A DNA stretch of 64,000 bases from Takakia lepidozioides (lineage: Eukaryota; Plantae; Bryophyta): positions 6,634,001-6,698,000 of the forward strand of contig CM060733.1 in assembly GCA_030704615.1 (NCBI GenBank), in the 5' to 3' direction. Below the pieces are notes generated by a model, which worked only from the letters and a program-made list of their open reading frames with translations, did not search any database and had not been told where the DNA came from. Shown piece after piece: positions 31,240 to 64,000 of this stretch. Each line of letters starts with the position of its first letter. The stretch's first letter is position 1. Both the position numbers and the translations under genes were made by a program.

Positions 31240-33810
31240 GTGAGTTCTCAAGTTTGTAATGAGTGGATTGTTGGGCCTCAGAGGCCGGCCAAGGGTGCGG
31301 CCAAGGGTCCCACCACCGGAGTTTCCTATGGAGAGAAACCACAAAGATCGAAGGAGGAGGGAGGTCAAAACGTTTCCGGCACTGGTGGGGATGGGAGGGC
31401 GGTGTGCATGGAGGGACATTTGAAGGACGCAGTGCAGACTTTGGATTTCATGGAACAACGAGGCTTTGGGGCATATTCCCATACCTGTGCTCATCTCTTG
31501 CAAAGGTACGCGAAGATGAAGGCTTTGGCAGATGGCAAGGGTGTCCATGCCCACATCATCAAAACTGGATTTACCCCCGACATTTTCTTAGGAAACACCC
31601 TTATCACAATGTATATGAACTGTGGGAGTGTTGTGGATGCACTCCGAGTGTTCAACAATATGCCTAAGCGAGATGTGGTCTCATGGACCGCCATGATTGC
31701 AGGATTTGCTCAGCAAGGGCGTGGTGAAGAGGCATGTAATCTCTTTCAAGAAATGCAAGGAGAAGGCGTGAAGCCTGACAAGGTTAGTTTCATTATCATT
31801 CTCAAGGCCTTCGTCAGCCCAGAAGCTGTGGAACAGGGTAGGTGGGTCCATATGGGCATCATCAATGCTGGATTTGAAACAGATGTCCAGGTGGGGACTG
31901 CCCTTGTCAGTATGTATTGCAAGTGTGGGAATGTGGTGGATGCACGGGGAGTATTTGACAAAATGCCTAAGCGAGATGTGGTCTCATGGAATGCGATGAT
32001 TGCAGGATTAGGTCAGCAAGGGCATGGTGAAGAGGCCTTTGAACTCTTTCAGCAAATGGAACAAAACAATGTGAAACCTGACAAGGCCACGTTTGTTGGC
32101 ATCCTCAAGGCATGTATCAACTCAGCCGCTCTGGAACAGGGCAAGTGGGTCCATGCTGGCATTGTCAAAGCTGGATTCGAATCAGATGTCCGCGTGGGGA
32201 CTGCTCTTGTCAGCATGTACTGCAAGTGTGGTCATGTGGCGGATGCACGCCAAGTATTTGACAAAATGCTCAAGCGAGATGTGATATCATGGAATGCTAT
32301 GATTGCTGGATTTTGTCAGCAAGGGCAAAGTGAAGAGGCATTTGCACTCTTTCAGCAAATGCAACAAGGAGGAGTAAAGCCAACCAAGAGCACCTTTATT
32401 AGCATCCTCAATGCATGTGCCAGCCCTGCAGCTCTGGAACAGGGCAAGCGGCTTCATGCACAAATTACTAAAACTGGATTTGATTCCGATGTCCAAGTGG
32501 GTAATGCCCTTGTCACCATGTATTGCAAGTGCAGGAGTGTGGTGGATGCACACCAAGCGCTCGACAAAATGCTTAAGCAAGGTGTGATTGCATGCGATGC
32601 AATGATTGCATGGCGTGCCCAGGAAGGGCATGGTGCAGAGCCTATTGAGCTCTTTCAACAAATGCAGCGAGAAGAGGTGAAGCTCAAGGAGGTCACATTC
32701 ATAAGCATCCTCAATGCATGCACCACCTTAACAGCTCTGGAAGAGGGCACTTGGGTCCATGCCCACATCATCAAACGTGGAGCTGAGACCAATGTCTCTG
32801 TGGGGACTGCCCTGATTGACATGTATGCCAAGTGCGGCAGTGTGGGAGATGCACGGAAAGTGTTTGACAAACTTCTTGATAAGGATGTGGTAGCATGGAA
32901 TGCGATGATTGTAGGATATGCCCAGAATGGATGTGGTAAGGAGGCCCTCCAACTTTTTGAGCAGATGCAACTGGGAGGAGTGAAGCCAAATGACATCACA
33001 TTCGTAGGTGTCCTGTCAGCATGCAGCCGTGTAGGCCTGGTGGATGAAGGTCATGACTACTTTCTTTCTATGAGTCGAGATTATAACATCACACCAGCAG
33101 AAAAGCACTATGGCTGCATGGTTGACCTTCTTGGCCGTGCAGGGCAATTGGATGAGGCAAAAGCATTTATCAAAGAAATGACATTCCAACCAGGCACTGC
33201 TGTGTTGGGGGCCTTGCTTGGTGCATGCAGAATCCATGGCAATGTGGAGCTAGCAGAATATGCGGCAGAATGTATCCTCAAGTTGGCACCAAGAAATGGT
33301 GCAATATATGTGCTGCTTTCAAACATTTATGCCACGGTTGGGAGATGGGATGCGGTAGCAAAGGTGGGGAAAGTGATGGAGGAGAGAGGATTGAAAAGGG
33401 AGCCAGGGCGTAGCTGGATCAAGGTGAGGAACCGGGTGCATGTATTCACTGTAGACGATAGGTCACACCCACAAACGGATGAGATCTATGCTGAGTTGGA
33501 GAAATTAACTAGGCACATGAAGGAGGCCGGATATGTGCCCGACACGCGCTTCATCTTGCATGATATGGATCAGCAAACTAAGGAACAGGCTCTCTGCCAC
33601 CACAGCGAAAAGCTGGCCATTTGTTTTGGTCTCATCAGCACCCCCCCTGGGACACCCATCCGCATATTGAAGAACCTTCGTATATGTGGCGATTGCCACG
33701 CTGCCTCCAAGTTTATCTCCAAGATTGTTGCCCGAGAAATCATTGCAAGGGATGGCATCCGTTTCCATCACTTTAAGAATGGGGTTTGTTCTTGTGGGGA
33801 TTATTGGTGA
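31240..33810 (+). CDS. Second PLS-DYW pentatricopeptide repeat RNA-editing factor; the true start is probably in an upstream exon or at an internal ATG
   Basis: 856-aa ORF (GTG start just after a TGCAG acceptor) with PLS triplets, [22 protein letters not shown] and CSCGDYW. Confidence 0.95.
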
Positions 33811-34292: not shown

Positions 34293-37200
34293 TGTCGCGG
34301 CCCTTTGCCTTGAGGGCAGGGGGTCGGGACACAAGAGGGGCTGCCCCTGTGGTGGGGGCAGTGGCAACAATAGATGCAAGGCTTGAAGCACCCTTGAGTG
34401 CCCAAGGCACTCAAGGAGGCGGAGGCGCTCACTAGGTGGAGCCCCGCACGCCGGGTTGCGGTGGGGGTGGTTCCATGAGGGGTGGTGGTAGATTAGTGGG
34501 TCTTAATGGGGGTGGCATAAGACTCGCTATGGGGCGGAGACCTTGTGGTGGGAGTCATGGGGAGTCTTGGGACTCATCACGGTCCAATGGGGCCGTGGTG
34601 GGTGGGCCAAGACTCACGGCGACTCGTCACCGGGAATCGAGGGTCTTCGTGGTGGTTCGCCATAAAATGGCATGGTTGTTTGTGGAACCCCCGCGGACAG
34701 TCACAAAAGTATATATAGGGAGTAGTAACCCCGAGAACGGTGCAAGCCTGTTGGTGACCAAAAGCTAGTGAGCGAGCGAGCCAGAAAGCGACCAAGGAGT
34801 GTGGAGCTATTCCAGACTGCCATCTACCAAAGGGAATTTCCACTAGGCCCAAATTGGTGGAGGGTCTTTTGGAGGAGCAAAGGGGGATCGTTATGTCCCG
34901 GCGAGCAGCCAAAGCTCCGAGTTGGCCCGGCAGCCAGTTTGGGAGTTAGGCGCGCGCATCAAGGCGAGTAATTATGACTTGAAGGGGAGCTTATCAAAGT
35001 GAGGTGCGCGACACTTGGTATCAGAGCTTAGAGTTTTGTACGCAATCGTCCTTGAGATCGGCCTCATCATGGGGTCGGGCAAGCCAAAGCGAAAGCGGAA
35101 TGGCCCGAAAGATGATGATCCTGGTGAGCTCGATGGGGGTAACGTATCACCAAAGCGGCAATTTGAGGAGACAATTCATGCTTTTGAAAGTGAGGCCGCT
35201 CAAGAACGGGAGGAATCTGGGGAGTCGGAGCCCCGGACTTCCCGGAGGCTCCGCCAGACCAACAGATGTCTCTCAAGCCAGCAACCTTTTGGGAAGGGTT
35301 GTTGGCACAGTTTGGCGGGACGTTGAAAGACGTGTTGAAGGCGGCTAATGTCACTTCCACTAGAACAAGTTTAAGGTGAAGTCTGCAGGATGGACGTCCA
35401 GTGGCTTACGAAAGTAAGAAATTGAATGAAGTGGAGTGATGGTGGCCTACGCACGAGAAAGAAATGAAGGCGGTGGTGCATTGCCTTGAGCTTTGGCGCC
35501 ACTATGTTGGTTCCAACTCGGTGAATGTGTTCACGGACAATGTCACGGTGAAGTATTTTGTCACGCAACCTAAGTTGTCCCTAAAATAACTTAGGTGCAA
35601 GATACTTTGGCGGTGTTCGACGTGGATATCCAGTACAAACCGGGACGGGACAATGTGGTGGCTGATGCTTTAAGTAGAAAGCACCAGCTCATATTGGTGT
35701 ACAGGGGCGAAACGGCGCTCCAAAGGAAGATTCGGAAGGTTTACCGAAAGGATGAGATGGCGAAGTCCGTGATGCGGGACTTGAGGTTGGGGTTTAAATC
35801 GCAGTTCCACTTGCAAAATGGACTGCTCCGGTATAAGCAAAAGCGTCTCTACGTGCCGAAAGGAGGGATCAGAGATAGTCTCTTGAGAGAATGCCATGAT
35901 GGTCCGCTTGCGGGCCATGGCGGAGCCAAGCGCACCGCGGCACTCTTGAAGAAAGAGTATTTTCTAGCCCAAACTGAGGGAGGAGGCCGAGGAGTATGTC
36001 AAGACATGCACCACATGCCAACAAAACCGAAGCGAGTGCGGGACTGTTACAACCCTTGCCGATTCCAAAGGGGTCTTGGGAAAGTGTCTCGATGGATTTC
36101 ATGACTGTTATGCCGCTGTCAAAAGGTTTCAATGCGATCATGGTGGTGGTGGATAGGTTCTGTAAAATGGGCCATTTCATCCCCACCAAGGAGACGGCAA
36201 CGGCACAGGAGACGGGACAACTTTACTTCGCCCACGTCTTCAAGCATCATGGACTCCCGAAGGATATTGTCTTGGACTGCGATCCAAAGTTTACGAATAA
36301 ATTTTGGAGGGCACTTTGGAAAAAGATGGGGACGAGGCTCAAGATGAGCACCGCCTTCCGACCTACGACGGACGGCCAAACGGAAAGAGTGAATTCCGTG
36401 GTGAAGCAGATCTTGCGAAATTACGTGTCGGCAGACCAATCAGACTGGGTGGAGCACTTGGACGCGACAGAGTTCTGTTATAATAACACAAAACACTTTG
36501 CAACGGGAGTTTCCCCTTTCATATTGGTCTATGGAAAAGCACCTCTGGTCCCGACAAGTTGGGCCGCCCAGGATGTTGAGGAACCGGCAGCAGCGGCGGT
36601 ACTGGAAAAACGCGAGCGTTTGTTGAAGCTCGCAAAATACAACATTGCCAAAGCTAGGAAACGGTATGAACGACAAACGAATCGGAAGCGGAGGGAAGTT
36701 AAGTTTGAGGCAGGCACGGAGGTCTGGTTGAACATCAAGAATTTTCTATCTCCGAAAGTGAGTCCGAAGTTCGTACCTCCGTATGCGGGCCTCTTTCGCA
36801 TCCGGAAGGTTATGAATGAGGATGTGTATGAATTGAAGCTACCGACAAACAGCAAGGTGCATCCGGTATTCCACGTCTCCCTTTTGAAACCTTACTTCAA
36901 AGATGAAGCGTGTTCGAATCGGCATCAAGTGTTGCGTCCGCCACCTGTGCTGTTGGATCATGAAATAGAAGGGCTATCATCATGTGGAGGCATCTTGGGT
37001 GTCTGCCTCAGAAATGGGAAACGCATCCGAGGCGGTTGATGGGGACATCAAAAGCGGCAGAAGCGTTGATGGGGACATCAACCTTGGAGCGTGGGGGAGG
37101 AAATGCATGCTTAGCCCGGCTTAGCTTAGCTCAGGAATCCGATTGCAAAAACTTGTATTGTACAAATTTTGTTATAAATGAAATGGTTTCCAAATGTTGT

Positions 37201-38699
37201 GCGTCTTATTTTGTTTGGAATGGTGATGCATGGTATGGTTGGCTAGTGTGTAGAATGCATGCTAGCTTGCAAAAGTGGGAAAGGTAAATTGGATTAATCG
37301 TGTGTTTGCGTAGTGCCGAAATCGGGTGACTCCCATCCAATGGGCAAGGAAACTTGCGCCTTCTTTTGGAGTTCACGTGCTAGTACGCACATGGCGCGTG
37401 CGCGTACTATAACTGCGCTACCGAGGGGGTTGCCATGTAGTGCGGGTTAACGCGGAACCTACGTGCTTCCGTTCACGTACTATAATCGTGTAGCCTCGAG
37501 ACGAAGTCGTAGTGCGGCTTCGGCGTGTTCCCGTACCTCAGGCCATCATTCCAAGGCGGACCCAATTGTAGTGATTGGGGCGCACGGTTGGTTCAAGGTT
37601 ATCTTCCTAGTAAAAAAAGATTCAAGGTGAACCCTTGCTCAAGGTGATGTCAAAAGCGGCATCATGAGCGGTCGCAAGCAATGTTGTTGCAGTAAGGCGA
37701 TTCGATCCTCGGGGAGGATCGTTCATTGGCCTTGAAGTGGGCCAAGAAGAGTGCACTGGGAGGAGCTTGAGAGGCTCCACCTTTGACCGGGACTTGGAGG
37801 AAGTCGGCCGAACTAGCTAATGGAGAGTAAAATCAAGTGTGGGGTTTGGTTCTTTGCCATGGGACGTCGTGGTGCGGAAACAAACTCCTTGATGTGGGAC
37901 GCCACAACTTGGATGTTCGTTTCTATAAAATGGACAAGTCGATTAGGACATCGACTTCCTGTTGGTAGGGGTGTGTGTCGCGGCCCTTTGCATTGAGGAC
38001 AGGGGTCGGGATACAAGAGGGGCTGCCCCTGTGGTGGGGGCAGTGGCAACAATAGATGTGGGGGCTGAAGCACCCTTGAGTGCCCAAGGCACTCAAGGAG
38101 GCGGAGGCGTTCACTAGGTGGAGCCCCGCACACCGGGTTACGGTGGGGGTGGTTCCACGAGGTTGGTGGTAGCTTTAGTGGGTCTTAGTGGGGGTGACAT
38201 AAGACTCACCATGGGGCGGAGACCTTGTGATGGGAGTCGTGGGGAGTCTTGGGACTCATCACGGTCCAATAGGGCCGTGGTGGGTGGGCCAAGACACACG
38301 GCGACTCATCACCAGGAATCGAGGATCTTCGTGGTGGTTCGCCATAAAATGGCATGGTTGTTTGTGGAACCCCCGCGGACAGTCACAAAAGTATATATAT
38401 GGAGTAGTAAACCTGAGAACGGTGCAAGCCCGTTGGTGACCAAAAGCTAGTGAGTGAGCGAGCGAGCCAGAAAGCGACCAAGGAGTGGAGAGCTATTCCG
38501 GACTGCCATCTATCAAAGGGAATTTCCACTAGGCCCAAATTGGTGGAGGGTCTTTTGGAGGAGCAAAAGGGGACCGTTATGTCCCGGCGAGCAGCCGAAG
38601 CTCCGAGTTGGTCCGGCAGCCAGTTTGGGAGTTAGGCGCGCGCATCAAGGCGAGTAACTATGACTTAAAGGGGAGCTTATCAAAGTGAGGTGCGCGACA
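34293..38699 (+). mobile_element. Ty3/gypsy LTR retrotransposon, internally deleted (no protease or RT); LTRs 34293-35013 and 37976-38699
   Basis: LTRs TGTCGCG...CGCGACA, TSD TATTG on both sides, PBS TGGTATCAGAGC (tRNA-iMet) at 35016-35027, purine-rich tract before the 3' LTR. A gag start at ~35059 is followed directly by RNase H and integrase. Confidence 0.96.
35385..37039 (+). pseudogene. RNase H-integrase portion of gypsy pol, with frameshifts and stops
   Basis: GRPVAYESKKL, WRHY, IQYKPGRDNVVADALSR, CHDGPLAGHGG, WESVSMDF, VVVDRF, TDGQTERVN and HPVFHVSLLKP motifs. Confidence 0.9.
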
Positions 38700-41914: not shown

Positions 41915-42958
41915 GTAAATGGGCAGCTTGGGAATCTAGGGGTATCTCGACAGTCAACAATCTATGGGTCAGCTCCCCCCAATCGCTACAGCAAGCTTTA
42001 GGGACCACCCGCCTTAGATCCGGGATTGCTCAAATCATCCTCTCCATCCCAGACACTTGGAAACTGATTCTCAGAGCAGGGCAAGGTGATTTTCATCCTG
42101 GTCAATGGGTTATGCACAATCCTCTCTCTGTACAGGTCTTCTACGTTTCCGTGGTTTCTCATCAATGGTTCAAGGGCTTCTGCTTCACAGCGGACGACCT
42201 CTCCGGACGTCTTTGTCTTTCCAGTCAGGACCTAGTCACAGTCCCTAATCTCAATTCCACCCTGGTTCGTATTTGCCAATGGACCTCCCAGGACAAAGTA
42301 TTCAATCCTACTGCACCCAGAGGTATTAACACCCTTACTTGGCTTAACAAGGGACCCTTCGTCTTATTTGGGAATTCTGGCATTTCAACATTGCAACTAG
42401 ACCCATCACAATGGAAATGGGCTTTCCAGGAAGAGCTCCACCCCCTGTTCTCATACACGGCCAAGATGGGCCTCAGAGCGATGCTCGGTGCAAGCCCTCC
42501 TATCTCAAAATGGGAAGGCAAATGGGCTCATGAAAACTTCAATCAGGAGAACTGGAAAGGGCATTTGGGCAACCATCTGGGATAAGACCAAGCCAGCCAA
42601 AATTAGTGCATTCTTATGGCAAGTGGCAAACAGGGTTCTCAAGGTGGGCCAGTTTCTGAACTACAAAGATGCGCTCCTGTGTCACTGCTGCACAAATCAG
42701 ACAATAGAAACACTAGAACATTGCCTTCTCTACTGTCTGGCACCAGCATCCATCTGGCCGATAGTGCAATGCTTCTATAGCTCCTGGGAGGCATTGCAAT
42801 TTGGATCCATGGCAATCTTACTTAACTATTGCAAAAGCCAAAAATCCAAAGCCACCGACTGCCCTGTCTCTGAGTCTCTCAGAAGCTCGGTACTTTGGAA
42901 CATCTGGAAAAGTAGATGTGCATGGGCAATCAACAATGAGAACACCTCTGTTTCATAG
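41915..42958 (+). mobile_element. L1-clade non-LTR retrotransposon 3' fragment (zf-RVT region)
   Basis: WATIWDKTKPAKISAFLWQVANRVL...CHCC...ETLEHCLLYC...LWNIWKSRC is the typical plant L1 ORF2 C-terminal zinc-binding region. Confidence 0.8.
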
Positions 42959-47057: not shown

Positions 47058-47995
47058 ATGAGTCTTTGTGCTCCAGAGTGGGATAGAAGTGGCAAAGTAC
47101 TAGATGCGGTCACTCCAACAAACTGTTTTTTTCCTGCGGTGAAAGGAAAAAGGGGATTCTGTCCATCAGAAAAGAGGCCATCTTTTGCACTTGGCCTTCA
47201 TGTAAGTCTTGCTTCTCTGTGTCTTTTTTAGATGGATTGCTTGAATTTATGCCAAGAAGTATACTTTTGTTGAATAGTTTCAATGGAGGATGCTTGAAGT
47301 GCACATGGGCTCTTATTTTTGCACTTCCGGTGATTTTTTCAGGCCGGAGCATGCCTGCGCAAAACCGTCCTGCACTGAGGATGGGCATGTAACAATGTAG
47401 GGCCAAAGCAGCAAAGGGAGTAAATCACAGTGGCAGCTGACCTACTCCCCTCATTGGACCAATGGGCAAGAAACTGAAGAAGTGGTGGCTCGGCCAAAGC
47501 CACCCACCCCTGTCAAGGATTCCATGCTGGAAGCAGTAGTGAATGAGACAGCTACTGGAGCCCCAGCACCCTCTAACAACAATATCCAAGATGATGAAAT
47601 GGTGTCCTGGTTACAATATCCCCTCGATGATTCATTGGAAAGGAACTATTGCTCGGATTTTTTTGGAGAGCTGCCAAGTTCAAACATTGCAGGTCTTGAA
47701 GGATTCGCTTGCTGTTGGCCAGGGAGTAGGCCGAGGTCAGCGGCTGCCTCTACCAACCACTACGGGGAATGAGAATGTACTGAATAGGGCTGAGAGTGCT
47801 GAGGCTGCTATGGCATTAGGAGATGGGCGTGTTGTGGGTCTAACATCACAGGCAGGGGCTGAGGCCTTCACCAAAGTGTGGACCTTGCACCCACCTGTTG
47901 CTAAGGGGCAACCACATGGCCTCACTCCCAGCTCTTCCAAGGGCTTTGGTTTGTACCCAACTTTGGGCCCATCTCCCACAAGAACAGTTCTGTGT
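47058..47995 (+). pseudogene. PIF: Truncated phytochrome-interacting factor (PIF)-like bHLH pseudogene, N-terminal part only
   Basis: MSLCAPEWD start (cf. MNHCVPDW), degenerate APB-like PEH...EDGHVTM*GQSSK with stop at 47398-47400, and DDEMVSWLQYPLDDSLERNYCSDFFGEL. Frameshifts present; no bHLH domain follows. Confidence 0.72.
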
Positions 47996-48359
47996 CCCAG
48001 CACATGTGACTTCCATTGTATCTGTATTGCTCAGTGGCATAGAGGCATGAACATTTCTGTTCCCACAGTTTCTGACAAATTAGACACAGTCAATTGTTCA
48101 CACAGTCTGTTCAATTGTTCACTATTATGTTCACACAGTCAATTGATGGTCTCTTTCAGGATGTCAATCTCACTGATGATGTCCCTAGATATACTTCTGA
48201 ATTGCACCTCACCTTCAATTTTCTGCTGAAAGGATTTGTTGGTTGCTTGCAGATTTCCACTCCTCAATGTCCATGCCGACATGTCAACAACATGCAAGGT
48301 CCTTCCACGCAGTCTCCTAGCTAGGTACACCTATATTGTCATGGTCTCCCATAACTTGT

Positions 48360-51300
48360 GTCCATTATTGAGTATTGTATCCTTCAAAACATCATCTGCT
48401 CGTCTTTGTAGGGTGGTCGATAAAGGGTCTGCACACAGGTAGAGGACTGAATGTAAGGGTTATCTTTTCGGTCTAGGAGCATGATGCTCATGCGTCGCAC
48501 TCCAAAATACTCCAGACCTGTCGTAAACACGGCAAGACGAGTTCTTTCTGCATAGGTCATCCTGTTCACACACCTCGTGAACCAATGGCATTGCACGGGG
48601 TCAATGGAGTGGTGGAAGTTGCAGTGTCGTAGGAAATCTGCCGGCTCAATAGCACAGGTCCCGTTGAACAATACCCTTAGCGTCTCTGGAGTGAGTAGAT
48701 CCAAGCAAGCTCGCATTTCTGATTTTTTTTTGGGAGATGCATTTGCATGCTCGATACCCAGAACAAACCCTTCATGCATGGCAAGGCCTATTTCCCTTCA
48801 ACCCTCAAATAGGTGGCTGTATATTATTGCTCCAACTTTGGATTTCACATCCCTCCCAACTCTCCTCCTTCACTTCAAATTTTCGGAATGTCCACCCAAG
48901 ACCTTCATCAATCTGCTCTGTAGACAGCTTCTTGACCAGGTCTTTAGCATCTTCAATAGATCTGGTCAATTGCTTAAGAAGTGCCCACTTGCTTGGCCAT
49001 CTGAGCCTACAATCTCTCTCTAAATCTGTGCGTAGTTTCTGGTCAACCCCTTTCTCCAGGTTTTGAGACGTTGGCACCTGGTTCAACATTATGAGTAGGG
49101 TTGCATACAAAAAGAAGCGTGGGACCTCAATCATATAAGAGGCCAGCTTGAAGATTAGATGTCTGAGCATGCGGGCCTGCATTTAAGAATTTTTTACTAT
49201 TTTCAGTGGAAATCAATTGAAGGAAATCTACTAATTGTGTTTACTGAAAAACAGACCAATTTTCGAAGAGGAAGATGTGGGCGAAGTGTGAGGCACACCC
49301 AGAGACGCCTGTAGCAGATCAGACTGCTGCAATGCTGCCACAAGCGAGGCCATAGATGCTTGCCCCCTCGAGATTGGGGAGTGCCTACTGATTCCACCTC
49401 TCTTTCTCTCTCTCTCAAACCTTTCCTCTCCCTCTCTCTCCACCAATACAAGGTGGCCCCGAGGAGTCTGGCCAACATGTGAGAGTGGTTAATTAGAGTG
49501 TTGGATTTGAGCAGGGAAAGAGGATTTACAGTGTCTAGTTGCATATCAGGACGCACGACCTCGATATCGAGCTTGACATGTAAAAGTCGTCCTTGCATAT
49601 TGTCCACATATTCAAATATTTGGTTGTAATTCTGGGGCCAAGAATAACACAAAGTTAGTCCAACTTATCCCAAATTATGTCAACTAAAATTGGATACTTA
49701 TTTTTGCTCTGCTGGGCATACATTACAGGTGAAAGGGAATCTCACGTAGTGGATTGACCATAATTGTTTCTATGTATTGGTAAGCCACGCATCTCGCAAC
49801 CCGTCAGCGTCATATGTGTTTGTTTCTGCGATCCCGCTTGCGTGTATGAAATCCACCTTAGGTTTGTACCAGCTTCTTTGGATAACAAGATTCTGCATCA
49901 TTGTTCTGTAAAAGCCTGCAAATCTTTTCCTTGGTGCACCTACAGAATTCCAATGCTTTTTTATGAGAGTTTGTTAAATCATATGCATATACTTGTAGTC
50001 ATATGCATGTGTAATTTTAATCTCCATGACAACAAATCTTTGTGATAGTAAATCTTTTCTTACAGTAAATAACAATGTTGGGCTTTCACAATTCTGGTAA
50101 CAGGGTGGCGGTTTTTTCTGTTATACCTTAATTCGAGTCTCCTGGATCCTGGAGGACCTTAGGTGGTCGTTGTAGGTCTTGAACACTTTCCTCTCTACAT
50201 AGAAGTGTTGATAGGCGAAGAATGCCTCATCCACCTATGACGGGCTTCCAATAAGATTGATTCGTCTTCTTCGGTGAGTTGATGTGCTTGATGGCACATA
50301 ATGTCCAATTGGGATCTTGTAAAAGAGCTGAATGTGGGCATCTCCAAGATTTTGTCCACATCTTCAAGATCTGATGATGGTCCCCTTTCTAGGCCCTTGC
50401 CATAAGCTTCTACAAGAGCCTTTGCTGCTTGTAAGGCATCACACTCTTCAGTTTGGGCAACACATGCCTCAAACTCATCCCATTTTTTCCAATATGGTAG
50501 AGCAACAAATTCGAATTCCCTTCGAATGTCGCTTGGTGCAAACATGGCTAAGGTCTCATCTCTGATCACCTTTGCCAATTCAAGCTCGGTACATCCCATC
50601 CCTCTCTTGGTGTCTTTGCGATTGCATAGCTCCAGACCAATTTGTCTTAGCCCCTCCTCCAGAGACAAATCTCCCCTAACCTTATCTTCGAATGACTTGA
50701 AGGCCATCCAAAATGTTTTAGATCTTCTTTCTTTAGAAACATTGCTGTCACTTTGCAAGCAACCAACCTTGATGTGACGTTCCTCCAAGGCGTCAAAGTA
50801 AGCTTTGCATGAACAGATCCACAACTCTGACAAGGATTCTAGCTTGAAGTCATCATTGGAGTCACTGATGATGATAGGCTGGTTCATAGGTCCATCTTGG
50901 ACCACGTCCTCCAAGTGATCAAACCCATCATTAGGATTTTCAGAGGGGGAGAGAGATGTTGGCGGCCATGTGGGTGACTGGCCTGTGACTGGTCGCTTGT
51001 GGAAGCATTGAGATTCAGTTGTACATAGGGGAATGACGGGGGACCTGTACAAAGTTTTGAGGAATTTAGCACATGTTGTCTTTTGGCAAGTAGCACCTTG
51101 TACATATAGGTCACGCCAGTACACTAACTATATTCACCATGGCAGCCCCTCGTCTTTTACAGATACAGCCCTCAAGGACTTCTCATGTTTCTATTGTAGT
51201 TACATCAGGTGCTTTGCTAAGTTCTCCCCATATTGGATCGGGCCAGTCATTCCGATTCATAAATCAGGAATCAGGAATGGTCAGCAGCAGTTTCTCGCTT

Positions 51301-52771
51301 CCATATTTGATCAATTGCATTTGGATTTGGATTTCTAAAACAGATACTAATACATAATAGATGTGTATGTGATGTGAGAACCTGGATAGGAGGAGGTATC
51401 CGTGCGCGAAGTTTGAGAAGATCTTTCATCAGAGGAGGGAAGTGACGAAGACAATCGAGCTCTTTGATTGGAAGATGCTGGAACACGCAAGAATTGATCA
51501 TCTGGATACATGTAGACATCATCGATGCCTCTTGGCATTGCGGGAGGTCCACCTCCTGTTTTGTCAGAGATTGGTAAGTTTTAAAATGGTCACATAATAT
51601 TTCTGTTCTGCCCAACCATATACTCCCTGAGCTTCTTCCCAACCACGGATGGGGTATGACTAAGTGCCCTCACTTTTGGCACAAGGCTGCAGTTCACTAA
51701 ATTATTGGGGTATATATAGACCACTTCACGACCAGATTGGTAGAGACAGATTCCTTCTTAATGGAGTTTAAACTTCTGTACCTGCAGAATTAATTCAGAG
51801 AGGTATCTACTTGGAAGTTCAATTTCATGAAAATGCATCAAGAATAATGTACCTGTAGAAGGTCCAGCTCGGTATGGGATTGATGTTGGTCCCCTTGATG
51901 ATGACGCAACAAGTGATGAGGGAGGCAATTGTTCTTCATATGGTGAAGGCAGGTCTTCATATGTTGGTCCCCTTGATGTACCATCATCTTCATCATTAGG
52001 CATGTCTCCTTGCAACATTGCAATGTAAGAAGTAACAGCAGCCCTTGGTAGGATGCTAGGCTCTAGGCAATACACCAAATACGTGTTGGATGTAACCGTT
52101 CCAAACAAGCTTCCAAGATTTGCCACAAATAGTAAGAGTGAATAACTCCGTTGTGAACATGCCCCCTCTAGCCTCTTTGATCTCTTGTAGAATATTCCCG
52201 AGTAGGTTGGCCCTGTGGTATGAGCATATCGTGGGACTTGCGCAAATGCATTTGCAATTGCGAACTCCACAGAGGTGGGTGTGAAGGGTGATGGGTACAC
52301 ACAACCAGCCCACCGAGTGTCTCATGATAAACTCACGGCCACTGCTGGAATATCAGATGGCCAAGTAGCCACTGTGGGTACTGTACCACCTTGTTTGCGC
52401 ACCCAAATGGTTCCTCTTGGTAATTGATACACAGTCCGGTTGATGATTTGTGAATGGCGAGTATGTGTAGCACTTGCGGCTGGTCTGCCTCTCAAAGCTC
52501 TCCCAAATTGGGGAGGAAATGCAAATCTTTGCCCACGTCCCTGAAGTGGGGATGGAAACACTGCCACCCTTGGAGGAGGTGTAAATGTTTCGGTCTCTAC
52601 ACTATACCTTGAACCTTGATGACTTGGAGATGCACTGGCGGAGAGATTTGATTGCATTCTTGAAGATTGTCCTTGGCAAGGCAACACCACCCTTTGTGGA
52701 GGAGTGAAGGTATCATCCCCATCTCCTTCATCGTATTGTGAAGAAGGTGGCCATAGGCACCTGTTATCCAT
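48360..52771 (-). pseudogene. Multi-exon divergent HECT-type E3 ubiquitin ligase gene, decayed
   Basis: N-lobe KPKVDF...DADGLRDAWLT (~49870-49775) and MLARLLGATLYW (~49480-49443). C-lobe WFTRCVNRMTYAERTRLAVFTTG...IQSSTCVQTLYRPPYKDEQMMF (48384-48779) retains the catalytic-type Cys. Upstream ORF blocks at 50195-52771 lie on the same strand. Confidence 0.72.
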
Positions 52772-54006
52772 CTTGGAATACTTGTAGGCTGTATTCTCTT
52801 CCTAACATGCATGGAGGCCAGTGTTTAGAAGATACCTATGAGTTCTCACAATCAGATCCTCAGAATTTGATAAATCTTCAAAGGCATGTATATGTTTCTC
52901 TTTCTCTCTCTAATTGCTTAAAGAGGACAACAAGTTCTTAGGAACAAGAGGGCCTGTGAAACTTACAATCCTCTCCACTAGTGTTCACCTGCAACAGGAC
53001 TTTCAAAGGCTGTCTTCCCAGTCCGCTTATAGCCCGATCTAAATAGTTTGCAACCTGCCAAACACCCTCACCTCTAAGAATGCCTAGTTTAAAAAAAATA
53101 AAGTGTGACTCTAAAATTTCACTAGTAGTAGAGAAGGTTGAGGGCCCGATGTCTTCTACGGGGACAATACAATGTCACCATGCCGATGGGGCTTTGGCAC
53201 ATAGATTGTAAGTGACCTTTATGTTTGAAACAACACATTGCTCTATAGTTGTTCTATCTTGAGGTTACAAGGCTACAAATGATTTCAAACCTTAGATCTG
53301 ATAGAATTGAACCATGACAAATGGCTGTTGTTGAATAGATGTCTTCTGTCTCTCTCTTTCTCTCATCGTTCTAATCAATCTGCCATTCGAAAACTGCAAT
53401 GGACTTACATCCACAAAGCTCTTGCTGCAATGAGTATTACAGAAAAGATTCCAACTTACACACTATTTGCTACCTTTGTAGACATGGTGATGAAATTGTA
53501 GTTCAAGAATGTTGTCAAAAGTGTCCAATCTACTATTTGGAAAGGGGAGGGATGAGCAAACATCACAAAACTCTATGTTCCAGCATATTTCAATGTTTTG
53601 GTGAGGCTGTAGTTAAGCAACTGCATGCCTGAAGATTATGGATCCTATAAAAGCTGAGAGACACAAAAGATGGACATATTGTTTGACTTATTTAATCCAA
53701 CCCTCTAGGTTGAAAGAAAGCCCATGCAATGTGTGGACATGATCCATTAAAGGGGAAAGCAACCTGAGTCTGTAAAATGTTTAGCCTTTTATAGGTCGGC
53801 ACTTTGTGAATAGGTAAGGCATTACTCTCATACATGGGAGATCTCTCCTAGTCCTCATGAATAGTGTCTTTATTGGTAGGACGCTCTTTCTAAGAGCCAG
53901 ACCAGAAATGACAGGAAACTACATACTAATACCTAGTTAGCAGGATTGCCTGCCACCTTCTGTCCACATACATGAATAACCTGCTTTTCCTTTTATGTTA
54001 TTGCAG

Positions 54007-57000
54007 CCTACGACAAGCTTTGCATGTTCGGAATACGAGTGCATGCAGGGATTGATGGGGCTTCACACTTTGTGGTGTATGCCAAAGTGGCCCGCGACAA
54101 AACTGCAGGGACAATATTCTCAGGTACATAGTTAAGACTCTATGTACTTTGCACATCTTTTTTGGCCAAGTGAACTAGCTGTAGTTTCCAAATGACAGTG
54201 CACCACTAACGAGCGTATTTGTGGATAGGTTACAGGGAGGCAGTCTCCAAGTACAATGTACCTTTGAGGATTCGATCAGATTTCGCATCAGAACACAACT
54301 TGATCAAAGAGCATATTGAGGGAGCTCGAGCCAATATTAGAAGTCCATTTTTAGCAAGAGCATCCACGCATAATGAGGTGCTATGATGATTAAGTCCCTA
54401 ATGAGGAGAAATGTGCACATTGAATGACGAGAGCAAGTGAAGGGCTGTAAGGTTATCTATATTTAAAATGTGAGAAAAATGGGTGTGCATTCCACTGGTA
54501 GTCCATCAAATTGATTGTAGTTGGTATACTTCAAGAGGGCCTTGATGTTTGGAGGGCTCTTGTGGGGCATAAAGAAGATGAAAACACTGCAGCTTGACAA
54601 ACTGAGATATTCGCAGCTTTGTAGAGTGACATATATGTCCCGCATTGCATAAGAATAATGTCTGCCGAGGGGTGAGGTGAGTACCCCAGCAGTCAACAAG
54701 GTCAGCACCGTGGGGGTTAGCACCATGGTAAGGTTGTCCGTGGAAGTTAGTTTGATAGTTAAAAATTGACAAGGCTTTCCATGACTGTTTTGACATGTAG
54801 CGAATAGAGCACTGGTGGAGGCACTTATGGGAACGAGTGGTTTTCTTCTACAATAATTGTTTCCAACAAATGGAGGTTGATGGCATTCTGAACATGGATG
54901 ACCTATGGCAGCGGGAATCATTTATGTTTGTGTACATCCCGATTGTCCAGGCAGCCGTTGATGAATACGTTGAGACATGGAACCATCACCGAGTGCGAAG
55001 AATCAATGAGAACAATCGTTATCGAGATTCTCATGTCCCTGCGCATAACTTATGGGAGTACGAACTGCTGCACGGGTGTAATACCTTACCCTCCAGAGAA
55101 GCATGTGTTCATTTGTTATTATTGTTATGAACAAGCCCATCCCTAGATCAAATTTTCACATTAGAACATTTGACAAAGTGTAGGGTGAATTCTTGTCCAT
55201 TATGCTGGGAAGCCACTGGATATGGCAGAGTGAGGTGGGCAGTCTTTCAGGCTGCGATAAAGGGGAATGATGGCAATTGACTGCTGGATTGTTGGTGATT
55301 AGTGGAAGGTGGAGCAATGATATTGGGGGATCTGAAACTATGAGAGATGACTCATCGGAAAGGTGTAGAAATATTCCCTAAGTGGCCGGGACATGAGGTA
55401 AATTAGTTAATCTTTCAGAAGCCTGTCCAGGGGCCTCTCTTGGTATAGTGCCACCGAAGTTTTGTAATTTCTCTGTGATCACGCGAGTGTTGGTGCCTGC
55501 CACAGTACGCCCGACTACTGGGTTTTTGATCCTCTTTCATAATAGAGAGGGACACCAACATGCGGGATTAGCAGCATAGTAAATGCAGTATATTGTAGAA
55601 TCAGAGCCAATCATTAGTTCAAGCTAGTGTCACTGATTTATACTCAATTCTTTCTACGTTTTTTCTCCGATTCTCGGAAGAGAGAGAGAGAGAGAGAGAG
55701 AGACCTTGGGAGTGATATTATGGTATGCCCTCTCTTGTAGTAGAGGGCTGCTACTGAGTATATGTTAGCTGGAAATAAAATTTATAATTTGGCTTCTACA
55801 TTTCGTCTTTACCTCTGCTCTCCTTCAACCAACCCTTTGTTATGTCTGTAGTGTATACACATGGGCTGTCCTGGTTTGTTCTTTTTTGTCTATTACTGCA
55901 TACGTCAAGTTTCGAAGTTGTGCAAGGATGTCACTCCATTTCGGATGCAGCCTGTAGCACACCTGCCTCCTGTCTGAATTTCAAGTAAACGACGTTCTGG
56001 GTTCATGGCTGGCAGACAATGGTAGTGCGCCAATAAACACTTGCCCACTTGCATGCTCTTTCTAGAAGTGGACCTCATTGTCTGCCCCAAACCCAAAAAG
56101 ATGGATTCCCTCTGCAGGCCAATGGAGTCCACAACCTGCCAGGGTTGATGGCAGGTGGACTATTGTGATTCCATTGTTTACCTGTCACTTGTGTATGCTC
56201 TTCAAGGAGTGGACTTGTCTGTGAATGTGATGTAGGGGGTCTCTCAATCTTCATGAGCAATGAAGTCCACTGCAGCGAGTGTAGTGCAGCAAAGACATCT
56301 TCTTGTGTCTCTCGACCATGTCTTACTCCTAAGCCACAGTCCTGCGGTTTTTGTTGTCTATAAATGGATACTTTCCCTTTGTATCCTAACGACGGAACAT
56401 AGTGATGAGAGTATTTTGAGGCTGATGTTTTGTAGACACCTGATTTCGGTGACGTGTATGGGAAAGTTTGATTAAGGATTGTGATGAAGACAAGGGCTGC
56501 ATCACCAGTTCAGTTTTGAACCCCGGTAGCAGTAAGTGATATAGCTCATGGGCTAGCAAGATATCCTGTGATTGTTTAGAATGTTGGGTAGATACATCGC
56601 AACGATATGCGATCACATGTGAAGGCCGGCCAAGGACATGTGTAAACAGAAACCCTATCTGCGTCTTCCCTTCCGCTGCAGCGTGGGTAGGGTTAGTGTG
56701 TATCTCTAATCAAGTAACTAATTAGTGGGAATGATATGCAGAGCCCCTTGTTTTCACTCTACAAAAGCTGAAGATGAAGCATGTGTGGTAGAACACATGA
56801 TGGATGTTGATGGTGTTTTTTGGTTGTGTAGGTGGATAGACCATCTCCTCGAGGATCCTTATGCAGGCCTTGAGCACCCTGATGCCATTGGCACACATGA
56901 CCCAAGTCCACGAGGTGGTGATCAACAATGTCGAAGCACGCCTGTGCTGGATGATTTACCAACTACTGGGGCGGAATTAACTTGTGATCTCACCCTCTTG

Positions 57001-57240
57001 AGAGATCGGGCCTATGCAACCCAGGTAGGAAGGCTGCCGCATTCGGTGGCCTGCTTCTCATTCCATTTGTACCTTTCACGGTATTGTTACGAGGCAATGA
57101 CACGACATGTGTACATCGATGAACTTGAGTTGATAGATGACTCTGATGTTAGTAGAGAGGCTTTGCAAGTTTTGGTCGATGTAGCACATGTATGAGAGCA
57201 TCTATGGAAATATATGGCCTCACATGAGAACTTTCTTCAT
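54007..57240 (+). CDS. Intron-containing IS3EU-like DDE integrase/transposase; core exons 54007-54123, 54229-54377, 54801-55075, probable 3' exon 56832-57024; 5' exons degenerate
   Basis: Phase-consistent GT-AG splicing gives AYDKLCMFGIRVHAGIDGASHFVVYAKVARDKTAGTIFS|GYREAVSKYNVPLRIRSDFASEH...STHNE|RIEHWWRHLWE...YIPIVQAAVDEYVETWNHHRVR. This matches the pattern HKL...HGGIDGYSR...GLPSRVRSD.G.EN...S.HNQRIERLW...WN.H. Confidence 0.8.
55679..55703. repeat. (GA)n microsatellite
   Basis: Direct AG run. Confidence 0.9.
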
Positions 57241-58289
57241 GTTTCTTTATGTTTGAGATCCAACACTTGTGACTCCTATCCCTGTCTATTCTATGTAGTT
57301 TTGGTGCATCCAATTAATCACTCGGGATTCTCCACAAGCAAACCCTTCGCACGATGCCTCGCTATCTTTGTATGCCCCACCTTGACCACCGCGACGACAC
57401 TGCTGACTCCTGCTGACACAACATGGATTACGTGGCAGATCAGAATTCGCCCAACCCTTCGCTCAATCTGACCATAAATGAGCTGGAATTTATATTAAAT
57501 AATCCGATCGTTATACGACATGTATACATATACATATATGGATATGGTATGTAGGTATTAGTACCTACCTATTGTAGGTCCTGTCTCACTAAAAAGGATT
57601 TCCTTGAAAGTCTTCACTTCTTTTTCCTAGGTTTAAATGACATAAAAAATCAATTATTGGATAAAACCAAGCTTCTGTCCTCTGATTTGTTTTTTTACTT
57701 AACGAAAGCGTATAACAAGGAATATCCTTGTGAGTATTAGTACAGGGCCAAACAAACAAAAAACAAAACAAAACAAAACAAAATAAGGATAATAGTATGA
57801 AGCGATGAGGCGACCGGGAATTATTATACGTACATTCACAAAAAAAATGACAACCAACAAATTCATCAAGTGCGGTTGCTTAGTCATATGGAAGCCTTTG
57901 CAGAAGAAATAATTGTTTGGCAAATTGTTCGGTATTCGTATGATTTTAGTTGGATCGGAAACTTTGTACGGGCAATTATCATACATGTACATACGTTCAC
58001 AAAAAATATTACAATGAATGAAAATCATCCAGGCATGGAATGATCCGTTCAATACTTGTATGAATTTTGTTGGATGCGAAACTTTGCAAGGGCGAACAGT
58101 CCATGTATACGTACATACAAAAAAAAATGACAACTAACAAAATTGCTCAAAGTGGAGGTTTATAAGACGACTACTCTGCTGTTGTGTGTTTGGCTTATCA
58201 TTTGCATTTTCTAATACTTGTATGGTCTCGTGTAAATGGAAGAGTTATGTTTACGGCTAGTGATCATTCTATTTCACACAAATTTATTT

Positions 58290-58853
58290 ATTTATTTCAC
58301 CTACTACTATCTACGGTTCACAACTTGACCACATTTGGACAAATGCTCCAAACCAACAATGTATATCCAGAAAATCACATGAACAATGAATTGATAATAT
58401 AAGTCTTCTTGATCAAGCCTTCCAATACAAAGTCGCAGGTGGAATAGATGATTGTCGCTGGATCTCTCTCTTCTGAGGACCTTACATTGAAAACACATGT
58501 TGGTGCTCTTCCCTACCATCCTCCGTCAACAAGTGAACTTTTGGGAACCTCGATTTTTGTGGTGCTTCCACTAAACTGCGACTTTAATTTGAATTTATCC
58601 ATGAAATCCAACAGTTGTTGTTTGTTTTTTGCATGGTTATTGTTATTGTCCTTTATTTGTCAACATTAAGATCGCCCAAAATGATAATTGGACAATGTTT
58701 GGGCAAATTTTTAATTAGAGCTTCAAGTTTGTTTAGGAACGTAGAAATTGTACATGAATGAGCTCTATAAACACATACAATATATAATATATATTGAACA
58801 CATGTATGCAACGTGGGATATAATACAATATATATTCTTTGTAGGTCTTTCAC
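58290..58853. mobile_element. Helentron/Helitron-associated AP-endonuclease fragments in both orientations
   Basis: Minus strand reads IVCVYRAHSCTISTFLNKL...CPIIILGDLNVD and LLDFMDKFKLKSQFSGSTTK (58853-58555). Plus strand reads PTTIYGSQLDHIWTNAP (~58295-58350). Confidence 0.62.
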
Positions 58854-59639: not shown

Positions 59640-60735
59640 ACACCATGAAGCCATACTTGGGATCTGAAATTGACTTGGTTATGCTCTGAGGCAAAGTCGG
59701 AGCGGATGCGCAATGGCACTCCGTACTTTGAGATTGTCTCTTGATACCCTATTGGAAAAGGAAACAACTCACATTCGTCAATTTCAAATATGAACCACAC
59801 TCAATTAGCATATGCAACATACATTGATTAGCAAAGATTCAACATGACTTATTCATATACTGGCATTAAACTAACCAAGTAACTACATAGTTTCCATAGC
59901 TTATATAACAAAACTGTTTGTGTAAAGACTACAGTGAATTTGTCACAAAACTGAAGAGAATGATCTATTTGACAATGTTAAGAAGATACCAGCAAATATT
60001 GTTTCTGCCTTCTTGTTGCGAGCCACAGTAGCTGTCAAGGACGAGAACATGACAGAACACAAACAAAAGATCAGACTAGAGGTATAAGACTAGACAAGAA
60101 GTCAAGGTCGGCGTGGCCGAATGCATGGTAGGTGAACATGAATCAAGATGATCTTTATAACAATGGACAATAGTACAAAATACTGGAACTCGACTCGGAT
60201 ACTGGAATGCTGGAAACTGGACTGAATACTGGAAACTGGACTGGAGTACTGGACTGGGAACAAGAGTAGCTTGAACTTGTGTTGGCGAGACTGAAGAGTG
60301 TCCAGTCTCGCCTCCTATATATACTGGCTACTAAGAAGCTTCCCTAAGAAGCTTCCCCTATGGAGGTTTTTTGCTGGAGAAGTTTCCAAGATTAAACAAA
60401 GGTTTCTTGATGGAGAAGCTTCCTTAAACAAAAGAGGTATCTTGATGGAGAAGTTTCCTCCAAACGAAGCTTCCTGAGTAGTTTCCCAAGTTACTCTTGG
60501 TAATTTGGTAAACTCCCGGTAACTTGGTAAGTAATGGTAAATCATGGTAGATCATGATAAATCACGGTAAGTCATGGTAACTTTCGGTTACATGGTAACT
60601 TGGTAACTTCTGATATTTACTCCTGGTAAGTTCCTCTGGGCTATGTCCGTGATAGTAGCCCTCAAAACAAAATGTGAAGCTCGGTCAATGCCAACGTACA
60701 CTCGGACACCAAATATACATAATTTATCATAGGCT
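59640..60735 (-). pseudogene. Second IS3EU-like integrase paralog, disrupted by a solo LTR
   Basis: Reads YDKLCIFGVRVYVGIDRASHFVLRA[solo LTR]TVARNKKAETIFA|GYQETISKYGVPLRIRSDFASEHN, with the same intron positions as 54007-54377. Confidence 0.8.
60033..60654 (-). mobile_element. Solo LTR of the Tcn1-like family at 61507
   Basis: TGTCA...TGATA termini and 5-bp TSD GTAGC (60028-60032, 60655-60659). The reverse complement aligns with 61507-62092. Confidence 0.93.
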
Positions 60736-61506
60736 GTAAGATAATCAAGGAAATTGGAGTCAAGGAACTGGCTCTACAAAAGAAGTTTATCGTGTATTAT
60801 ACATATATCATATTGCACCTCTACAAACAGCCAACAACACTGTTGCATTGCCTCAAGGTAGATGCTAACAATAATTCCTCAATTGCACTCCAGCCTCACT
60901 AGGAACTAAAAACTCTCTATATGTGGCGGAAAAGAATCTGTACGCAATTGAGTTATTCGGTAGCCCCTAGCACACTGTCTGAATGAGAGCTAATTATTAG
61001 AATGTTCAGATTCAGGTGACGTTGCTTACTTCTTACCCATATGTGATGGGCAAGGAGATGTTCTTTTTGAGCTAGACATATTGGGATACTTGCTATTGAG
61101 TGCAAAGAGGTTATTACCTTGTTACACTTGGGAAAAAAGCTTGACACAACATGTATGCAACGTGAGAGAATAAACATGAAACTCATAATACTTGTAACCT
61201 TTGCTGAGCCAGACAGTACACATTCTTCCTCGACAGACCGGAAAGACTTCATTTTAAGTTTTTGCAGTTAGTAATGACAGATTAAACTTAGAACTAAATC
61301 TGTATTCAATTAGCTTGCAAGAATTCCTCTTCTATATACAATGGTGTAATTTTTTATAATGCATTCAATTAGAGAACACCTACAATCCATATGCCACAAC
61401 GCCATGGGCATTGTGACATTATATTGCGTCATCGCGTCCTCACAAGTGTCCGTTCTCTATGTCGTCGTTCATAATGCTCTGGTGAAAGGGTTCGAAGTGC
61501 TGCAGC

Positions 61507-64000
61507 TGTCACGGACATAGCCCAGAGGAACTTACCAGGAGTAAATACCAGAAGTTACCAAGTTATAATGTTACCGAAAGTTACCATGACTTACCGTGAT
61601 TTACCATGATCTACCATGATTTACTATTACTTACCAAATTATCGGGAGTTTACCAAATTACCAAGAGTAACTTGGGAAACTACTCATGAAGCTTCTTTTG
61701 GAGGAAACTTCTCCATAAAGATACCTCATTTGTTTAAGGAAGCTTCTCTATCAAGAAACCTTTGTTTAATCTTGGAAACTTCTCCAGCAAGCAACCTCCA
61801 TAGGGGAAGCTTCTTAGGGAAGCTTCTTAGTAGCCAGTATATATAGGAGGCGAGACTGGACACTCTTCAGTCTCGCCAACACCAGTTCAAGCTACTTTTG
61901 TTTCCAGTTCCCAGTACCCTAGCCCAGTTTACAGTATCTGGTACTCCAGTCCAGTTTCCAGCATTCCAGTATTCAAGTCGAGTTCCAATATCTTGTACTC
62001 TTGTTCATTGTTATAAAGATCGTCTTGATTCCTATTTACTCATCGTGCATTTGGCCACGCCGACCTTGACTTCTTGTCTAGCCTTGTACCTCACAATGGA
62101 TCTTCAACCTTATGAGTCCCTACTACAACAAATCCTACTACAACGGTTCGTTCAAATCTTCAACAGACTACAAGGGAACCAAAGGTCAGCATACCCGAGA
62201 AATTTGATGGGACGAGATCAAGATTTCGCGGTTTTGTTCAACAAGTACGATTGTTCCAACGACTACATCCACAACACTACTCTGATAAAAGTATTCAAGT
62301 GGGATTCATGGGCACCCTTCTATCAGGCACTGCCCAATCTTGGTTTGCACCGCTATTAGAGAAAAATTCGCATTTACTATATAATTTTGAAGCGTTCATG
62401 TCCGAGTTCACTGCAACGTTTGGAGAGAATGATAGAGAGAGAGTTGCAGAGACAAAGATGCGAAATCTTCGACAAGGAGCACGTCCAACTTCTGTTTATG
62501 CTGCCGAATTTCGACAACTTGCGTGCGACCTTGACTGGAATGAGAAGAGCCTCATTAGTCAGTTTCGATGTGGTCTAAAAGATGATGTTAAAGATTTGTT
62601 GTTGACAATGCCAAACGTGAGTACACTGAGCGAATTCATCACCCAAGTTATTGCATGCGATAATCGTTTGTTCGAAAGACGTCAAGAGAAGCGATCTGGA
62701 TGGTCGACGACGCACCATGCCGCTGCTACTACGGCACCAAATACAACGATCCATCATACATCCGGTAATGATCCTATGCAAATTGATGCTGTCCGATTCA
62801 AGCCATTGACACCACATGAAAAACAAAGACGACGTTCGAATGGATTATGCCTTTATTGCGGAGAAAATGATCACATGACATTAAATTGCCCCAACAAGAG
62901 AAAATTCAAAGCTCGGGGCACCATTCAAGTGTTCGATACGAGGAGGTCGGAAACGAAGATGTCTTGTCACAGTAGGAACCATGCGGCTGGACACCCCAAA
63001 TTCCTCAAAAAAAAAAAGTCTCTTTCTACCTCCAGATTCTGTATCTTGTTTCACAGTTTCAGTAAATATCAGGATGCAAAATCGAGATATCTCCGTAGAA
63101 GCACTTTTGGACTCGGGCGCTTCAGCGTGTTTTATTGACAAAGACTTTGCGAAGCAAAACAATTTAACGCTCGTAAGAAATAAATTCTCGGCCCCTGTTG
63201 AAGTTATCGATGGACGACCGTTAGCATCAGGAAATGTTGACCATGAAACTCGACCCCTTGAAGTGAAGCTTAAAAATCAAGCATCACAGATTGTTTTCAA
63301 TGTCATCCAGTCTCCAACGAATCCTGTAATCCTTGGACTTCCCTGGTTTGTACTTCATAATCCTGACATCGATTGACAATCACGAAAAATTTCGGAAAGA
63401 CAAAAATGCAAAAGTACCAAAGGTATTCAACTCCTGTTTCTTGGAGCTAGAGCCTTCATGAAAGCTACAAAAAAAGAGGCGATATTTGCACTTTATGCAA
63501 CTCCGATCAAGACCACAACAGACAAAAGTACTTCAACATTACCCGCTCAATATCAAGATTTCAAAGATGTATTCGAGAAGAAAAATACAGATATATTGCC
63601 AGAACATCGACCTTATGACTGTGCAATTGAGTTACAAGAAGGAGCCCAACCACCATTCGGCCCAATCTATAACTTATCCCAGACGGAGTTGGCTGCATTA
63701 CGCGAATACATTGATGAAAATTTGTCAAAACACTTCATCCGACATTCCAAATCACCCGTGGGGGCGTCTATCTTGTTTGTGAAAAAAAAGGACGGATCAT
63801 TACGCATGTGTGTCGACTATCGCGGCCTCAACAAAGTCACAATCAAGAATCATTATCTGTTGCCGCTGATTTCTGGGCTAGACCAGCTGGGACGAACGAA
63901 AATTTTCACCAAAATCGACGTGAGATGAGCTTATAACCTTGTACGGATAAAAGAATGAGACGAATGGAAAACAGCTTTTCAAACAAGGTATGGACATTTT
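61507..64000 (+). mobile_element. Ty3/gypsy chromovirus (Tcn1/sushi-like) retrotransposon, degenerate, running off the window
   Basis: LTR from TGTCACGG at 61507. Gag EPKVSIPEKFDG...LLSGTAQSWF...LRQG...PMQIDA...CLYCGENDHMTLNC. Protease [24 protein letters not shown]...[11 protein letters not shown]. In-frame stops at 63374-63376 and ~63926. Confidence 0.93.

Follow-up and report, generated by a model that had tools for sequence, protein, structure and literature searches.

A probable GingerRoot/IS3EU remnant in Takakia lepidozioides from a transposon family with a HECT-type ubiquitin ligase gene

A 64,000-nucleotide stretch of Takakia lepidozioides DNA (contig CM060733.1, positions 6,634,001 to 6,698,000 of the forward strand; hereafter the window) contains a spliced DDE integrase gene on the + strand and a spliced gene for a divergent HECT E3 ubiquitin ligase on the - strand. 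From comparison with related loci, which are designated here by L numbers, we conclude that this locus is probably a dead, rearranged remnant of the GingerRoot/IS3EU superfamily and that it comes from an element family with a long-standing HECT gene. The superfamily is already known in plants; a description of the long-conserved HECT cargo is one that we could not find.

Gene content of the locus and family assignment

The + strand integrase gene was modeled as five exons, the borders of which were corrected using relatives as guides (Table 1). The exons comprise 326 codons without a stop, and all borders are GT-AG and phase-consistent. Three core exons match the Pfam family rva_4 (PF24764) with E values of 6e-13, 6e-4, and 1e-4, which bears out the spliced integrase with open, phase-consistent exons that an earlier note had read from the letters alone. 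Both acidic residues that the note had pointed out, in the IRSD and RIE motifs, are present. The first catalytic Asp, which the note had left unidentified, was located in a WHID motif, and the DDE triad is complete (D53204, D54279, and E54807). Of the 3' exons that had been proposed to extend to ~57240, a last exon with a stop was found, and its span was corrected to end at 57195. The exon at 54801-55075 is 56% identical to Ceratodon copies, and the closest named database relatives of the integrase are Ceratodon purpureus proteins. A profile search revealed no N-terminal integrase exon upstream of either integrase copy or anywhere in the window; the profile detects this exon in four unseen loci, and the N-terminal exons of the relatives are without an HHCC zinc finger. 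The spliced models of both genes were searched one exon at a time. The viral collection gave no match for the integrase, and the HECT exons had no matches in the protein database and metagenomes.

The HECT gene occupies ~52801 to 48339 on the - strand, and the frame 48387-48797 matches PF00632 (E 2e-11). Its last exon encodes the catalytic Cys within an SSTC motif (codon 48437-48435) and ends with YGRP followed by a stop (48341-48339). The 5' part, which is 34% identical to L013/L014 and is matched in L028 and L030 too, encodes an N-terminal region that lacks Pfam matches as well as the substrate modules usual for HECTs. For the conserved domain within it, Atlas was blank and the fold model was unusable (pLDDT 34). 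The spliced HECT gene with an STC-type Cys that had been described on this strand is thus real, and it is now broken. In the last exon, the frame is interrupted by stops near 48800 and 48385 and shifted near 48855; in the exon at 49743-50875, it is shifted near 50230 and again near 49880 and meets a stop near 49771; and the 5' part has a stop at 52324-52322. With a total of 4 in-frame stops and 3 frameshifts as compared to the relative L014, the gene is a pseudogene.

Table 1. Positions in the window of the two genes and of the features around them
Feature	Positions	Strand	Remarks
HECT last exon, most of the HECT domain	48339-49182	-	PF00632; 44% identity to L013/L014/L031
HECT short N-lobe exon	49518-49634	-	44-54% identity to L013/L014
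HECT helical region and start of N-lobe (D.DG.R motif)	49743-50875	-	
HECT 5' part	51857-52801	-	Pro/Ser-rich stretch; conserved ~125-aa domain (52453-52070)
88-nt AG..GT exon-like piece at the two-gene junction	52967-53054	-	
+ integrase, first surviving exon	53132-53207	+	first catalytic Asp, WHID motif, 53204-53206
+ integrase exon	54007-54123	+	HAGIDG motif; rva_4
+ integrase exon	54229-54377	+	second catalytic Asp (RSD), 54279-54281; rva_4
+ integrase exon	54801-55075	+	catalytic Glu (RIE), 54807-54809; rva_4, E 6e-13
+ integrase last exon, with stop	56832-57195	+	28-39% identity to L001, L013, L026, L031
Second GingerRoot integrase, truncated	61500-59672	-	pieces 61500-61379, 60740-60657, 60026-59978, 59761-59672
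Solo LTR in an exon of the - integrase	60036-60656	-	91% identity to LTR 61506-62092
Gypsy-type LTR retrotransposon, inserted 5' of the - integrase and continuing past the window end	61507-64000	+	gag and protease Pfam matches

The integrase motifs, compared by eye, match those of the published GingerRoot DDE (PMC6839031). Together with the rva_4 matches, they place the integrase, which had been called IS3EU-like, among the GingerRoot/IS3EU transposases. GingerRoot was described in 2019 as a superfamily that occurs in 18 moss species, in Selaginella lepidophylla, and in many aquatic animals; its ends are TA..TA, its target site duplications (TSDs) are 6 bp long, and it often captures gene fragments, with pieces of host genes present in 22 of 77 Selaginella copies (Cerbin et al. 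2019, PMC6839031). GingerRoot and IS3EU form one lineage with 99% bootstrap (Kojima and Bao 2023, PMC10045372). The proposal of a new plant transposon system, built on an integrase type foreign to the standard plant transposons, does not hold, as GingerRoot had already been reported from a lycophyte and mosses (PMC6839031, PMC10045372). Consistent with this assignment, the element has a DDE transposase of the lineage and no reverse transcriptase, LTRs, polymerase of its own, or HHCC motif; the LTRs nearby are assigned to a separate Gypsy insertion.

The comparison with relatives extends this likeness to the element ends. Two of the relatives, L013 (7678-17879) and L031 (495-13681), are complete: TA..TA terminal inverted repeats (TIRs) and 6-bp TSDs enclose an integrase and a HECT gene in each, and L013 contains only these two genes. 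At 10.2 and 13.2 kb, these relatives agree with GingerRoot in size as well as in ends and TSD, and the Takakia locus agrees in its DDE core motifs, its plant host, and the probable capture of host fragments with loss of transposase parts. It differs from GingerRoot in having no recoverable ends, and the GingerRoot paper mentions neither HECT nor ubiquitin and describes fragments only, with no conserved second gene (PMC6839031). IS3EU elements share the TA..TA ends, the 6-bp TSD, and a two-gene layout with an accessory enzyme (PMC10045372; Kojima 2025, PMC12730594). In those from fungi, the described cargo is either an alpha-kinase or a dioxygenase of the TET/JBP type, which has been proposed to act against silencing by methylation (PMC12730594), whereas here it is a HECT ligase. 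TA..TA TIRs were also found in L025 (9356-17477) from the limpet Patella vulgata, which has an rva_4 integrase and an alpha-kinase arranged tail-to-tail, as in fungal IS3EU. A terminal motif, TAnGGnnnnCCAAAAGGG(C/T)CA, is common to three HECT-bearing families (L013 at 7678, L014 at 8035, L028 at 6355, L030 at 5238, and L031 at 495) and is a candidate binding site of the transposase.

Layout of the locus

The earlier note had read the two genes as a single intact head-to-head unit of ~10 kb. Our comparison does not support this reading. Integrase and HECT do co-occur, as had been anticipated, in five other families, although in none of them head-to-head. The order is integrase-then-HECT on one strand in L013/L014, L031, and L002, and HECT-then-integrase on one strand in L003/L004, the element ends of which were not found; L028-L030 are arranged tail-to-tail. 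This amounts to tandem arrangement in four families, tail-to-tail in one, and head-to-head in none. In addition, no TIR/TSD pair was detected in 40000-64000 using a repeat finder and a TA/TG-anchored scan for TIR and TSD. For L013 and L031, scanning of this type does recover the ends, so that TIRs and TSDs were defined in these two relatives and not at the locus, where the termini had been noted as unidentified from the start. A scan of the locus with the terminal motif of the relatives did not exceed chance expectation: it yielded a single match, at 45632, where 0.78 are expected, and this match contains 3 mismatches and scores inside the shuffled range. The absence of termini fits a truncated copy or an end that lies beyond the window.

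The junction of the two genes provides further information. The HECT reading frame is separated from the first + integrase exon by 330 nt, which include the 88-nt exon-like piece. In tblastn, this piece hits nothing but a YggS gene, at 55% across its full 29 aa; the match is weak (E=2), and Atlas gave a similarly weak lead to PF01168 at 0.86. The motif is one that we take to be YggS/PLPBP, in agreement with both leads, and the piece probably derives from an exon captured from a YggS/PLPBP gene of the host. Beside the 3' end of the HECT gene is a frameshifted fragment (47300-48010, +) that is blank in Pfam. It presumably resembles the N-terminal portion of a bHLH gene of the PIF type and may be another captured piece. 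Degenerate tandem units of ~120 bp at 57800-58140 resemble the subterminal repeats of some element. Since no relative shows the head-to-head order, no termini were found, the N-terminal integrase exon is missing, and the junction holds a foreign-looking piece, the head-to-head order is probably not the design of the element, and the junction of the HECT gene and the + integrase is a truncation point.

The picture is complicated by the second, truncated integrase on the - strand. The two integrases in the window are 72% identical over 81 residues with saturated synonymous sites, and they are sisters in the tree. The - integrase is upstream of the HECT gene on the same strand, which is the order found in the closest relatives of this HECT. 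A solo LTR interrupts one of its exons between the two copies of a 5-bp duplication (GCTAC as read on the - strand); the boundaries of the LTR were read from the sequence. Since the two integrases are sisters, the partner of the HECT gene cannot be picked by similarity. The + integrase may well be that partner, the - integrase, standing in the usual tandem order, quite possibly is, or the partner was an integrase that has been lost. The reading that fits the locus best is a patchwork of fragments that stem from two or more related elements.

Alternatively, the locus could represent a natural GingerRoot subfamily in which integrase and HECT genes diverge from a shared promoter and the junction was damaged later. 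The adjoining genes, the labile gene order in the group (three other layouts), and the co-divergence of the + integrase with the HECT gene would all fit. However, the gap is too short to hold the missing ~110-150 codons as well as promoters and is partly taken up by the foreign exon-like piece, and the sister relationship of the two integrases means that co-divergence does not single out the + copy. Together with the missing termini and the lack of any head-to-head relative, these points make such a subfamily unlikely. For the rearranged remnant that we prefer, the head-to-head order would have arisen via deletion, nesting, or inversion.

Elsewhere in the window, two open PPR-DYW genes (11110-13635 and 31240-33810, both +; 841 and 856 aa) have a 303-nt repeat period and resemble each other at 75% over part of their length; a weak Transpos_assoc match lies close to the N-terminus of the first. 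They are possibly transposon-associated duplicates. LINE-like fragments with Exo_endo_phos_2 endonuclease and zf-RVT matches are located at 58656-58853 (-) and 42488-42958 (+). The direct repeats 34320-35013 and 38002-38699 (94-96% alike, 3.68 kb apart) flank an rve/SH3_Tf2 integrase frame (35996-37039) and form with it a shortened LTR retrotransposon.

The HECT gene as transposon cargo

In the five other families (L013/L014, L031, L002, L003/L004, and L028-L030), HECT relatives have an rva_4 integrase no more than a few kb away. L031 was found via its HECT gene and not via its integrase and thus provides an independent test of the linkage. Similarity among the element HECTs spans the whole gene, including the conserved N-terminal domain. 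Across six families, several of them from one assembly, the identities of integrase and HECT are correlated (Spearman 0.84, Mantel p=0.011). L013 groups with L031, and L002 with L003, in the integrase tree as well as in the HECT tree; exon alignments were put side by side only for the trees and for local identity counts. In comparisons between families, HECT dN ranges over 0.24-0.53 and dS is either saturated or exceeds 3; the integrase behaves similarly, and these values point to purifying selection on the element HECT. Between recent copies, dN equals dS, as expected from decay after insertion. The gene is multi-copy and some members are decayed. No HECT was found within the fetched flanks of the integrase loci L015, L020, L026, and L027; L026 and L027 (from 9291) are Ceratodon copies on one chromosome that are 99% identical and HECT-free in the 10 kb on each side.

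The conserved residues and the predicted fold show that the gene encoded a genuine HECT domain. The catalytic Cys is retained in 8 of 8 loci and in 8 of 8 database proteins that span the site. A structure model of an intact relative (pLDDT 69) retrieved HECT domains in all of the top 16 VIA rows, and its C-lobe superimposed with a Z of 7.2 and an rmsd of 2.4 over 72 residues; overall, the structural match scores are modest (Z 5.7-7.2, Foldseek E 0.02). With host HECTs, such as NEDD4/Rsp5, HUWE1, UBR5, HECTD3, and the plant UPLs, the element HECT shares the two-lobe fold, the C-lobe Cys, and an aromatic residue near the C-terminus. It differs from them in being transposon-borne, multi-copy, free of the usual substrate modules, and only 13-28% identical to solved canonical HECT domains. 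The His that usually stands two residues before the Cys is replaced in the element-borne HECT. This replacement, the distance from canonical HECTs, and the Foldseek value would be compatible with a scaffold or an E2/ubiquitin decoy that kept the fold and lost ligase function. We consider such a decoy improbable: in known HECTs, catalysis requires the Cys and the aromatic residue four from the C-terminus, and in the element HECTs the former is invariant down to 21% identity and the latter is kept.

Linkage in five other families, co-divergence, and purifying selection indicate that the HECT gene is part of the element and not a decayed copy of a host UPL gene, the outcome that the earlier note had named as refuting its proposal together with a lack of linkage elsewhere; the HECT tree used here covers element-borne copies. 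The gene has neither close similarity to canonical HECTs nor a host domain layout, and it is linked to a transposon. A host UPL-type gene, or a captured (Pack-type) host fragment, lying beside transposon debris by chance would accord with the host fragments in Selaginella GingerRoot copies (PMC6839031) and with the other probable captured pieces in the region, but is highly improbable and largely refuted by a whole multi-exon gene conserved in TIR-bounded elements, by 44% identity to element-borne copies versus 13-28% to solved HECT domains, by multiple copies with decayed members that are constrained between families and neutral between recent copies, and by its linkage to and co-divergence with the integrase.

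Proposed role and implications

Based on the family, a working element would encode a spliced IS3-type DDE transposase that binds the TA..TA TIRs, excises the element, and reinserts it with a 6-bp duplication. Its second gene would supply a divergent E3 ligase of the HECT type, and the N-terminal domain particular to this ligase is the likely substrate reader. The fold, conserved Cys, selection, and linkage of the HECT are established here, whereas its activity as a ligase and its substrate are inferred. The cargo of IS3EU elements is interchangeable (alpha-kinase, TET/JBP, and HECT), which suggests that it acts on the host and not in the core chemistry. Plausibly, though still tentatively, the HECT would ubiquitylate a host chromatin or silencing factor recognized by the N-terminal domain. 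We favor such a target over other roles, including control of the turnover of its own transposase or transpososome, which is conceivable but somewhat less likely. By extension, a plant GingerRoot/IS3EU lineage might long have kept an active HECT as a means of degrading or redirecting a silencing factor of the host, a proteasome-based counter-defense that we put forward as speculative.

To our knowledge, few plant transposons carry a dedicated accessory enzyme. No description of a transposon-borne HECT ligase was found in the searched literature; the Repbase IS3EU entries and a 2019 Kojima review, which lie outside its coverage, may record one. The Takakia locus is a poor specimen for characterization, and the complete relatives L013 and L031 are better suited. 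If the ligase is active, it could serve as a new targeted-degradation module, and the accessory slot of IS3EU would be one that is filled by different modifying enzymes (kinase, dioxygenase, or ligase) across hosts. Its substrate, in turn, would reveal a host factor that restrains moss transposons.
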